Below, one piece after another: positions 61,148-64,000 of a DNA stretch of 64,000 bases; the first letter of the stretch is position 1, and each line of letters starts with the position of its first letter. The notes beneath the pieces are model-generated. The model saw only the letters and a program-made list of their open reading frames with translations, made no database searches and was not told where the DNA came from. Made by a program: the position numbers and the translations under genes. The DNA lies in sequence record PV400809.1. The stretch is one strand, 5' to 3'.

Positions 61148-61741
61148 GTGGACACGCCCATGGCCTTTCCAAACGATCTACTGTTTCTGGAACGGTTCAT
61201 CGCTTTTAATAAAGAACGTTATTCCGATGAACCGAACATTGTTAGCGTATTAGAGCAACTCACCCTGGACAACACTACCCTCTCTGACCTCAGGAAAGTT
61301 GAGGTAGAAGGCGGTGAATTTGCTCGGGTGGTCAATATCGATTCCGAAGGTAAACTGACCGGTAAGAACCAACGGTACCTCCCAGCGGATTATGTGAAGA
61401 ATAAGGTCTCCATGCTGGAGACCCCTGATCCGGTTGATTGGGACGTTTTACAAACCCAGGGAGTGGAAGGTATTTACCAAGTCAAACGAGACGAGGATAT
61501 CATTGAAGGCGCGGTATTGGTGTTCAAAGGGAGTCGTAACCCTGAACACATTAAAGCCCTAATCAAAACCAAATGCTACTACGACTTGACGGATGATGAA
61601 ATTACCCTCGACGGGGAGTTCACTCAGGCTACCATTGACTCCAACACCGTTACCGGTACCCTGGCTGTCGTAGAAAGCCATTACGATGCCATTCCTCGTT
61701 TTAACGGGCAATTCCGTTACGACGGCACCCTCACGTATTAA
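61148..61741 (+). CDS. Tail/baseplate-associated protein (about 193-197 aa)
   Basis: C-terminal RFNGQFRYDGTLTY aromatic-Gly repeat typical of tail-fibre-adjacent baseplate proteins; precedes fibre genes. Confidence 0.6.
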   Translation: MDTPMAFPNDLLFLERFIAFNKERYSDEPNIVSVLEQLTLDNTTLSDLRKVEVEGGEFARVVNIDSEGKLTGKNQRYLPADYVKNKVSMLETPDPVDWDVLQTQGVEGIYQVKRDEDIIEGAVLVFKGSRNPEHIKALIKTKCYYDLTDDEITLDGEFTQATIDSNTVTGTLAVVESHYDAIPRFNGQFRYDGTLTY

Positions 61742-61756
61742 ACAGGACTTATTCTC

Positions 61757-63199
61757 ATGGCTGACAATCCCGTGGTGATTAATGAACAACCGGGATGGGT
61801 TGAACCTTTGTTGGCTCTGATGCCGGATGACAAGGTTGAAGCCACCGAAGAAGGCACCGGCAATGCGAACAAGCAAGCGCGTGTGCTGGACGCTCGTACC
61901 CGTTATTTGAAAGAAGAAGTGAATACCCTGACCACCAAAGTCAATGCGGTAAGTAATGACCGGTTGCCGTTTAACCGCAATATCGTGGTGTACGGTGACA
62001 GCCGTGCTTACCAGTGCGTGAAAGGTAACGTTGGTCTGGCCTTCTGGACCAGTGCGAAGACCGAGGGGGTCGTAGCCTTCCCGGATGCCATGAACGCCGG
62101 TGTCGATGGGAATACTACCTCCCAACAAGCCCAACGTCTTCCCCAACTCCTGGCTTCCTTGGATAAGTTCGATGTGATTATCCATTTGGGTTCGGGGAAT
62201 GACCGTCTGCGTAACCAGACGTTCAATGAAACGATCAATAACCTCTCCGAGATTTACGCTACATTGCTGGCCAATGGTAAGACCGTCATTGCGATCGCTG
62301 AAACCCCGGTAGAACAAGCCGCTATTGGAATCAGTGATGAACAATTGGCTATTCATTACCAAGTGCACCAGTGGATGCTCTCTGAGCTGCCTAAACGGGG
62401 CGTTATCGTGGTTAACCCCTGGGATGACATGGTAGAACCGGGTAATGTCAATAAGCCGCTGGCAGGCATGCTGGGGGACGGTGTACACCCAAGTCCCAAA
62501 GGAGCCGAGATCATCGGTAACCATGTCGCCGCTGCGGTGAGCAAGCTGTTCAAGAATACCATTACCTTGCCAACCAGTTATATCCCGTTCAGCACGACAC
62601 CACCAGAGACCGCGCACTTCTTCGGGAGTATTAACCCTAACCCTTTGCTGACCGGTAACGATGGTGTTGCGGGGGATTCGGGAGGTGCTACTATTACCAC
62701 GGTTGAGATCGCCTCGAATACCGGTATTGGGGGTAATCAACTAACCGGTTTGACCATTGGTATCACCAAGGAAGCCAACCCTTCGGGGGGCGAATACCAG
62801 GTGATGTCCTTTACGGGCACGCCTACCGGTGATCAACCAACCCTGGGAATGGAACAGGATCTCTCTATTACAAACCTGACCGTAGGGATGAAACTGGTAG
62901 CTCAGGGTCGTTGGGCGATTCAAACCGATGCTGAAGCGGTCTTGCAAGTAGGGTTGGAACTGGAAGTAACCTACCAGAACGATCAAGTCCAAACTGTACG
63001 CTCGGGTCAGAACACTGAACTGAATTACCCCCTGCGTCAAGGGGATCTCTCGGGGATCTTCGATACCCAAATCCTTGAATTGGCCAGTGTACCTAAGACC
63101 TTGAAACTCCGGGTCGTGATTGTGTTGAAGAAAGGGGTCGCCCAAACGACCACCGTGCGGGTGGGTCAATTGAACACCCATCTTGTCTTTACCCCTTAA
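61757..63199 (+). CDS. Tail-associated SGNH/GDSL esterase (480 aa)
   Basis: Blocks VYGDS, GVDGN, GSGND and GDGVHP; N-terminal fibre anchor ANKQARVLDARTRYLKE. Confidence 0.85.
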   Translation: MADNPVVINEQPGWVEPLLALMPDDKVEATEEGTGNANKQARVLDARTRYLKEEVNTLTTKVNAVSNDRLPFNRNIVVYGDSRAYQCVKGNVGLAFWTSAKTEGVVAFPDAMNAGVDGNTTSQQAQRLPQLLASLDKFDVIIHLGSGNDRLRNQTFNETINNLSEIYATLLANGKTVIAIAETPVEQAAIGISDEQLAIHYQVHQWMLSELPKRGVIVVNPWDDMVEPGNVNKPLAGMLGDGVHPSPKGAEIIGNHVAAAVSKLFKNTITLPTSYIPFSTTPPETAHFFGSINPNPLLTGNDGVAGDSGGATITTVEIASNTGIGGNQLTGLTIGITKEANPSGGEYQVMSFTGTPTGDQPTLGMEQDLSITNLTVGMKLVAQGRWAIQTDAEAVLQVGLELEVTYQNDQVQTVRSGQNTELNYPLRQGDLSGIFDTQILELASVPKTLKLRVVIVLKKGVAQTTTVRVGQLNTHLVFTP

Positions 63200-63216: not shown

Positions 63217-64000
63217 ATGGCTATTGGTGATGAAACAGTAACACCGGGTGAACTACCGGCAATTGTCGAGGAGTCTCGATGGGAAGAACACCTCCCGGCT
63301 ATGGTGACTGACGTACGAGTTCGCGGGGGAGACAACGGCGAGGGTGCGGCTAACTTCCAAGCTCGGGTGTTGGATGCACGTACCCGGTGGCTGAAGGAGA
63401 GTCTAGAATCCCTCTCAACTCAAGGGGTTGTTCTTAAAGGTAAACTCAATTCGGAAGCTGAACTGGAGGCTATTGATACCCAAGGGCTTCCGATCGGTAC
63501 GGCCTACTTCGTTAACTTTGCCCTACGGGTATGGAACGGTAACGAATGGGCGTCTTCGGGTTCCTTGCAAGGGGAACGGGGGATTAACATGTTGGGTGTT
63601 TGGCCTGACAACCTCGATCTCCCTCTGCCTGAAGGGAATAAACCCGGAGATGCCTACCTGTGGCGGAATGACATCCATGTTCTGGTTCCGGGTAAAACAG
63701 CAGGTGAGTTTGTCTGGGAAAGTTTGAACATTCGAGGTCCTGAGGGTAAGAGTACCTTCCAGCTGTGGAAAGAGATTCCTGGGAATGAAGAAAAGACCCT
63801 TCAGGAATTCCTGGCTTCCCAACGAGGAGATAAAGGTGCTCAGGGAGATGATGCGTTCGAAACCTGGAAGAAGATTCCCGGTAACGAGAACAAAACCATT
63901 ACAGAGTGGCAGGAAGCCATTCGGGGTGAACGCGGTGCTAACCTTCAGGTACAGGGAACTGTGGCTGACCGTAATGCGTTGAATGCTAAAGACCCGGTTG
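63217..64000 (+). CDS. Tail fibre protein with collagen-like repeats (partial, runs off window end; not in ORF track)
   Basis: SD GAGGA; MAIGDETVTPG...ANFQARVLDARTRWLKE...RGPEGKSTFQLWKEIPGNEEKT...RGDKGAQGDDAFETWKKIPGNENKT...RGERG; open to 64000. Confidence 0.85.
   Translation, partial: MAIGDETVTPGELPAIVEESRWEEHLPAMVTDVRVRGGDNGEGAANFQARVLDARTRWLKESLESLSTQGVVLKGKLNSEAELEAIDTQGLPIGTAYFVNFALRVWNGNEWASSGSLQGERGINMLGVWPDNLDLPLPEGNKPGDAYLWRNDIHVLVPGKTAGEFVWESLNIRGPEGKSTFQLWKEIPGNEEKTLQEFLASQRGDKGAQGDDAFETWKKIPGNENKTITEWQEAIRGERGANLQVQGTVADRNALNAKDPV

Follow-up and report, generated by a model that had tools for sequence, protein, structure and literature searches.

Why does a jumbo phage of Pseudomonas carry, among its tail fibre genes, a gene that databases mostly call a lipase? 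The question is raised by a + strand gene near the end of sequence record PV400809.1, of which we analysed a stretch of 64,000 nucleotides (nt), hereafter the window. Over its final 3 kb the window does not differ from Pseudomonas phage vB_PaeM_GXNNE2 (100% identity) and shares 96.8% identity with phage EL (Elvirus, Chimalliviridae), and its GC content of ∼49–52% identifies it as DNA of an EL-type phage and not of phiKZ itself. The gene is the orthologue of open reading frame (ORF) 157 of EL and its product is called gp157 here. It is labelled 'putative GDSL lipase family protein' in the EL record, 'lipase' in RefSeq and 'tail fiber' in GXNNE2 and IR-QUMS, the 'lipase' label being based on the Pfam name alone. 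The reading we favour, with a probability of about 0.6, is that gp157 is a short enzyme-bearing tail appendage of EL-type jumbo phages, namely a virion-borne glycan esterase, probably trimeric, that would aid adsorption. We infer its attachment to the baseplate, its trimerisation, its glycan substrate and a removal of O-acetyl groups that helps the phage to adsorb; the esterase active site, the N-terminus and the C-terminal domain on which this reading is built can be described more directly.

An uninterrupted ORF of 480 amino acids (aa) with an ATG start occupies positions 61757–63199, and in its product a complete and conserved SGNH serine esterase active site, with predicted catalysis, is evident at the level of both sequence and fold. 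Pfam PF13472 (Lipase_GDSL_2) reaches 53.8 bits, its cut-off being 32.9 (expectation value, E, 4.5e-14), and PHROG 6102 ('lipase') matches over its full length, residues 43–480 of the protein against profile positions 8–442 of 442 (E 6.1e-139, or 1.7e-58 from the C-terminal domain alone). In the AlphaFold2 model (mean predicted local distance difference test score, pLDDT, of 70.5) residues 71–265 superpose on solved SGNH esterases with a Z score of up to 19.8 and a root-mean-square deviation (rmsd) of 2.4 Å over 184 aligned residues (9kr1). The features of sequence and fold that define the SGNH superfamily are all found: blocks I, II, III and V, a profile score above threshold and the three-layer alpha/beta/alpha fold. 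The intact Ser-Gly-Asn-His set proposed by the initial annotation is confirmed, with S82, G118, N148 and D241/H244 all present, and the motif positions given there were exact, GDS corresponding to residues 80–82 and DGVH to residues 241–244. The GDS block of Ser82 and the DGVH block show no variation across homologues or among seven EL-like alleles; G145, N148 and D149 of block III are likewise invariant in both sets, and N113, G115 and G118 of block II are invariant in homologues, G118 in the alleles as well. The catalytic blocks are well beyond chance.

What would place this enzyme on the virion is its N-terminus. Residues 5–61 are 47% identical (E 2e-12) to residues 14–69 of the product of the next ORF, the orthologue of the EL ORF156 tail fibre (63256–63423 in the window), and the EL genome contains only two copies of this anchor module, those of gp157 and gp156. 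A tblastn search with the 70-residue anchor finds it, weakly (E 6e-4 to 5e-2), at the start of genes in Klebsiella P2-like prophages and Burkholderia phages. In Klebsiella phage ST437-OXA245phi4.1 the baseplate genes V-W-J-I are followed by a gene in the slot of the P2 gpH fibre or spike, and the match (E 6e-4) is with the first residues that this gene encodes; the payloads of genes in such slots are variously annotated as tailspike, endo-N-neuraminidase or CotH. The N-termini of PHROGs 9391, 16348 and 38759 are matched as well. Because the anchor resembles N-termini of the gpH slot that carry varied payloads, it is best read as a putative baseplate-attachment N-terminus of myovirus type followed by a helix. 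That long helix (residues 36–66), modelled with low confidence as a monomer, is probably a trimeric coiled-coil stalk. The isolated N-terminal part matches no Pfam family, and a word search with residues 1–70 for other payloads on the anchor was uninformative, returning the EL protein alone among 24 candidates.

That gp157 shares its anchor with the next tail fibre, as the initial annotation had it, is thus borne out by the paralogy, whereas an anchor of the phiKZ gp131 type is not what we found; the N-terminus is instead like those of the P2 gpH slot. The fibres of phiKZ are anchored through gp131-like N-terminal segments (PMC13250141). At E up to 10 nothing in the phiKZ genome matches the gp156 N-terminus (its paralogue, the gp157 anchor, was not itself searched there), and no EL protein that was scanned matches PHROGs 13857 and 2163, to which phiKZ gp131–135 belong. 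We also considered gp158, encoded just upstream, as a counterpart of the gp131 N-terminal anchor on which gp157 might dock. This candidate was rejected at the sequence level: BLASTP of EL gp158 against gp131 gives a best E of 0.63, which is no similarity, and gp131–135 fall into other PHROGs.

At the other end of the protein, behind a linker whose pLDDT is below 50 over residues 266–290, stands a beta-sandwich of the carbohydrate-binding module (CBM) type. Folded alone, this domain reaches a pLDDT of 77.7, and an all-against-representatives structural search aligns it with hyaluronan-binding CBM70 (4d0q) at Z 13.1 and rmsd 3.1 Å, with 156 of the 161 residues of 4d0q included. CBM4-2, CBM16, CBM61, CBM27 and CBM22 follow at Z 10–12, the first three of them at Z 11–12, and an alginate-binding CBM at Z 10.4. 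Similar values are obtained for C-terminal domains of tail proteins, such as the CBA120 TSP4 tailspike (Z 11.7) and the Klebsiella Kp7 fibre gp52 (Z 11.1), and Foldseek gives a probability of 1.00 for the jelly-roll beta-sandwich CBM fold. At the sequence level a Pfam search of residues 264–480 with E up to 10 is empty, so that membership of a curated CBM family is not indicated, and a protein-atlas feature search of the C-terminal part gave sub-threshold leads alone (0.83–0.86). The domain is therefore called CBM-like on account of its fold, without assignment to any named CBM family, and ligand binding by it is a prediction. The initial annotation had suggested a beta-rich C-terminal domain that may bind sugar; the beta-sandwich of CBM type is there, while for sugar binding itself the fold is what speaks.

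The esterase and the sandwich travel together. Residues ∼69–480 form a homologous unit that is found in other Pseudomonas phages at 30–50% identity. In podovirus-type prophages and IMG/VR contigs (with SU10-type portal and adaptor and a tail-tip protein) a 603-aa version with 42–44% identity lies directly after the tail genes, and its first 138 residues, unrelated to the EL anchor, match the tail-fibre PHROGs 1591, 1980 and 2712. The same prophages hold a second copy of 436 aa (50% identity), without an anchor, as the last phage gene beside the host junction, so that there are two paralogous SGNH plus beta-sandwich genes per podovirus-type Pseudomonas prophage (L003–L005, which are P. aeruginosa chromosomes, and L006–L008). 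Otagovirus phages of the phiPsa374 group have an anchor-less 425-aa version beside a 'minor tail protein', and the T7-like phages MR6/16/18 have a version at the right genome end. The comparison shows that the module has been shuffled between different tail-fibre N-termini, as is typical of receptor-binding proteins. Among the 70 phage records matched by gp157 in tblastn there is no chimallivirus besides Elvirus and none of the P. aeruginosa N4-like long fibres. The module was therefore gained within the Pseudomonas phage pool, and P. aeruginosa is the source of its closest relatives (50% identity). Structural neighbours in BFVD include the GDSL 'lipases' of phage nickie (ranks 2 and 3), a tail fibre of Vibrio phage Kuja, a Bacillus 'tail fiber esterase' and the PP99 tail spike. 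It should be noted that the record of one EL-like phage, MIZ-Pa99 (PV472050, L031; 95.8% identity over 3 kb), assigns it to Pantevenvirales/Straboviridae, apparently a mistake of taxonomy.

A tail-borne gp157 is supported, on the side of sequence, by an N-terminus shared only with the adjacent fibre, the position of the gene in the fibre cluster and the presence of the module in tail-fibre slots elsewhere. Modelling points the same way: the SGNH plus CBM layout resembles that of the two-domain acetyl-mannan esterase 6hh9/6hfz, which Foldseek also retrieves with the whole gp157 model, and the same CBM fold occurs at tailspike C-termini. We propose that residues 1–68 would dock at the periphery of the baseplate, in a socket of the kind that also takes the long fibre gp156, and that the sandwich of residues 296–480 would hold a surface polysaccharide of the host. 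On contact with P. aeruginosa the esterase would then free O-antigen, lipopolysaccharide (LPS) core or alginate of O-acetyl groups or of other short acyl esters. Deacetylation would make binding reversible and either unmask the receptor for other fibres or let the virion pass through the glycan layer, as has been shown for coliphage G7C and Pectobacterium phage PP99 with their esterase tailspikes. The catalytic module itself was acquired by exchange with other Pseudomonas phages. A further step, which we put forward tentatively and with the odds somewhat against it, is that EL virions carry two interchangeable appendages, gp156 and gp157, on one socket, the esterase stripping O-acetyl masks off a P. 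aeruginosa glycan (O-antigen, core or alginate) and so giving the fibre, or the Kelch propellers encoded downstream, access to their receptor. Taken as a whole, the initial interpretation keeps its complete esterase, its shared N-terminus and its CBM-type end, to which the occurrence of the module in tail-fibre slots can be added. It loses the phiKZ-type anchor, the name of tailspike in the structural sense, there being no beta-helix in gp157, and the notion of a distinct way of engaging the host.

Several points weigh against a tail appendage that deacetylates glycans. The anchor is weakly similar to fibre N-termini of the P2 type, as the E values given above indicate. Copies of the module without any anchor exist (the 436-aa prophage gene, the 425-aa Otagovirus gene and the genes at T7-like right ends), and PHROGs places the family of gp157, PHROG 6102, in the category 'moron/auxiliary'. 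Also, a GDSL-plus-CBD enzyme of a related Psa siphovirus, active on C2–C10 esters, was read as a non-virion lipase of the lysis cassette (PMC12173070, JBC 2025). All but the first of these would suit a soluble, non-virion esterase that is made late and released at lysis, where it might loosen exopolysaccharide or LPS and so ease the escape of progeny, or destroy receptors on debris. We consider such a role unlikely for the EL protein, which, unlike the anchor-less versions, carries a 68-residue N-terminus shared solely with the neighbouring tail fibre, a module for which a free enzyme has no evident need. Its gene lies within the fibre gene cluster and not beside lysis genes, and the siphovirus 'lysis cassette' position is also a place of tail fibre genes, the same cluster holding a 'particle-associated lyase'.

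The substrate is a matter of its own, as the SGNH fold is common to acetylesterases and lipolytic GDSL enzymes and any substrate read from the model is a candidate: a polyvinyl-alcohol esterase, acetyl-xylan and other carbohydrate esterases, a sialate O-acetylesterase and GDSL 'lipases' all lie within ∼2 Z units of the top match. A virion-borne lipase or acyl-esterase could thus act on lipid esters of the outer membrane (phospholipid, lipid A acyl chains) and help penetration. TesA/lysophospholipase L1-type enzymes head the sequence matches from solved structures and NCBIfam, although weakly (E 1e-3 to 1e-5), the Psa phage enzyme of homologous type sensitised cells besides hydrolysing C2–C10 esters (PMC12173070), and Pires 2016, as relayed in PMC5380687, lists a Pseudomonas phage 'lipase' as a virion depolymerase. 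This alternative seems distinctly improbable to us, given that the esterase is fused to a CBM-type domain and that the folds closest to this domain are those of polysaccharide binders; the structural neighbours are mostly carbohydrate or polymer acetylesterases, and the characterised phage SGNH tail proteins that we compared from the literature are all glycan deacetylases. Least of all do we expect a binding-only fibre, in which the esterase fold serves as a lectin and catalysis is lost or irrelevant. The DEV fibres are described as O-antigen binders that use an esterase-like domain, and a host-range study of related N4-like phages found no direct link of this domain to host specificity (PMC12625404), but in gp157 the Ser, Gly, Asn, Asp and His are invariant in homologues at 30–50% identity and in the seven alleles, which argues for selection on catalysis.

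Read as a virion-borne glycan esterase, gp157 joins a known class of proteins. G7C, PP99, Aristophanes, Possum and the Vi phages are established examples of phages with an esterase on a tail fibre or spike; PP99 gp55, for example, is a trimer, and deacetylation of the host O-polysaccharide by it was shown by nuclear magnetic resonance (PMC6989608). G7C gp63.1 and PP99 gp55, both O-polysaccharide deacetylases, combine a virion-attachment N-terminus, an SGNH esterase and carbohydrate-binding beta domains, and gp157 has a similar make-up with a putative anchor and a CBM-type sandwich; the phages of the former two are podoviruses, the order of domains and the anchor differ, and the activity of the EL protein is predicted. 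There is no detectable sequence similarity between gp157 and solved tailspike esterases. Closer in host are P. aeruginosa N4-like phages (Litunavirus, Luzseptimavirus, DEV), whose long tail fibres have GDSL/SGNH and CBM domains for which O-antigen binding or deacetylation was proposed (PMC12625404). These fibres share with gp157 the host species and an SGNH plus CBM-type unit, but are much longer, have pyocin-like knobs and place the CBM ahead of the esterase. The proteins of PHROG 6102 (from podovirus-type prophages, the phiPsa374 'lipase' of Otagovirus, MR6/16/18 and the nickie-like GDSL lipases) are homologous over residues ∼69–480 and differ in having a podovirus tail-fibre adaptor N-terminus or none, one relative being read as lysis-associated. 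Cellular enzymes such as Roseburia RiCE17 (6hh9/6hfz; SGNH plus a CBM35-like domain) and PbeAcXE (7toh) also pair SGNH with a sugar-binding beta-sandwich, without a virion anchor and with ∼14–16% identity, so the likeness is one of fold only.

Within the family to which EL belongs, the phiKZ gp131–135 complex and the DUF7941 proteins of Goslar are peripheral baseplate appendages with distal propellers, CBMs or glycoside hydrolases. Carbohydrate-binding and glycoside-hydrolase payloads were proposed for Goslar, and propeller domains are described for phiKZ gp131 (PMC13250141). The EL gp156 N-terminus is unmatched in phiKZ, and the structure papers on phiKZ and Goslar report no SGNH esterase. 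A literature search returned nothing specific on the EL receptor or the EL baseplate structure. A GDSL lipase is already annotated in EL, SGNH fibres are described in P. aeruginosa N4-like phages and carbohydrate-active payloads are proposed for Goslar, all of which speaks against a distinct mode of host engagement; and as esterase tail fibres are well established, also in the N4-like phages of P. aeruginosa, gp157 would bring no change of concepts.

The gene is part of a + strand cluster, gp158-157-156-155-154-153, in which it is separated from its neighbours by 15 nt upstream and 17 nt downstream (Table 1). A promoter/terminator scan found no terminator-like site between the cluster genes, with counts at chance level. 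The EL protein (CAG27251, YP_418190) has equal length, 97% aa identity and identical neighbours, and the gene is found in all nine of the nine EL-like records of our phage collection. Downstream, the full EL ORF156 protein matches PHROG 3904 with E 5e-214. The GXNNE2 record PV400809 was linearised within this long fibre gene, so that window and record both end mid-gene, and the partial fibre gene at the record end carries a single misc_feature, 'similar to tail fiber'. Upstream, the ORF158 protein is a relative of virion structural proteins from jumbo phages of Erwinia, and its relatives adjoin genes so annotated in phage RisingSun. Its length is 193–197 aa (GTG at 61148 or ATG at 61160), compared with only 109 aa in the original EL record. 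As the PHROG matches of gp158 start at residue 5, the long form is favoured. In IR-QUMS the ORF158 orthologue is labelled 'terminase large subunit'. A distant gp158 paralogue lies at 151009–151467 of EL, and four related copies are present in the Erwinia phages RisingSun and Joad.

After the long fibre gene come the Kelch-repeat beta-propeller proteins gp155 and gp153 (L009:12666-15820), of which gp155 is a 'virion structural protein' in RefSeq. They recall phiKZ gp131, which bears a seven-bladed propeller at its tip, although the N-terminal parts are unrelated in sequence. PHROG 21620 is 616 positions long; gp158 matches positions 1–191 and gp155 (L009:12666-14165) positions 192–390. Because these are consecutive parts of one profile, the gp157–gp156 pair may be flanked by two pieces of what is a single protein in other jumbo phages.

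Table 1. Features at the gp157 locus of the window (positions counted from the first nucleotide of the window)
Feature	Position	Strand	Basis
Upstream gene (EL ORF158), first of the + strand cluster	61148..61741	+	PHROG 18233 1e-24; PHROG 21620 'virion structural protein' 1e-12
AGGA ribosome-binding motif, 9 nt 5' of ATG	61744..61747	+	direct sequence reading
Whole gene, EL ORF157/gp157 orthologue, 480 aa	61757..63199	+	ORF list; 100% identity to GXNNE2 'tail fiber', 97% to EL protein
N-terminal module, residues 1–68, putative baseplate-attachment piece and long helix	61757..61960	+	paralogy with tail fibre N-terminus
SGNH/GDSL esterase domain, residues 69–265	61961..62551	+	PF13472 4.5e-14; Z 19.8 to 9kr1
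Block I GDS (G80-D81-S82), nucleophile Ser82	61994..62002	+	aligned with GDS of solved SGNH esterases including 7c2a
Block II NAGVDGNT, residues 113–120, oxyanion-hole Gly118	62093..62116	+	aligned with NAGVSGDTT of 7c2a
Block III GSGND, residues 145–149, Asn148 (oxyanion hole)	62189..62203	+	aligned with GGND of 7c2a
Block V DGVH, catalytic Asp241 and His244	62477..62488	+	aligned with DHVHP of 7c2a
Linker, residues 266–295, low model confidence	62552..62641	+	pLDDT <50 over residues 266–290
C-terminal beta-sandwich, residues 296–480, CBM type (by fold)	62642..63196	+	domain folded alone, structural search
Long tail fibre gene start (EL ORF156, 1046 aa in EL), cut by window end	63217..64000	+	PHROG 3904 'tail fiber protein' 6.7e-40; N-terminal paralogy

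Variation among the seven distinct EL-like alleles was counted as codons with synonymous changes only versus codons with replacements. The counts are 9 versus 3 in the N-terminus, 36 versus 13 in the SGNH domain, 9 versus 0 in the linker (where no aa change occurs) and 34 versus 18 in the C-terminal domain. As synonymous-only codons outnumber replacement codons in every domain, the gene is under purifying selection, and the C-terminal domain is its most variable part. In one public run (X1) the assembly is split into short, substitution-rich contigs exactly over 62093–62770, a range that takes in the later half of the esterase domain and the beginning of the C-terminal one, which suggests co-existing gp157 alleles in that sample. 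Logan contigs of a small transcriptomic library cover 61396–61641 and 61730–61991, which is no proof of transcription.

In sum, a gene mostly labelled 'lipase' can be soundly re-read as encoding a probable tail-borne, receptor-modifying enzyme. If this is true, it corrects an annotation, 'lipase; moron/auxiliary metabolic gene', that is propagated by pipelines, and adds a small soluble-domain enzyme for probing or stripping the O-acetylation of alginate or LPS. Should gp157 be virion-borne and deacetylate a P. aeruginosa glycan, this would help to explain how Elvirus phages adsorb and which hosts they infect; these phages are under consideration for therapy cocktails (PMC12141865). And if EL virions do carry two appendages on one socket, with the esterase unmasking the receptor, gp157 would give nucleus-forming jumbo phages their first demonstrated enzyme for modifying a receptor, and its cassette would be one demonstrably exchanged among podo-, myo- and jumbo phages of Pseudomonas.

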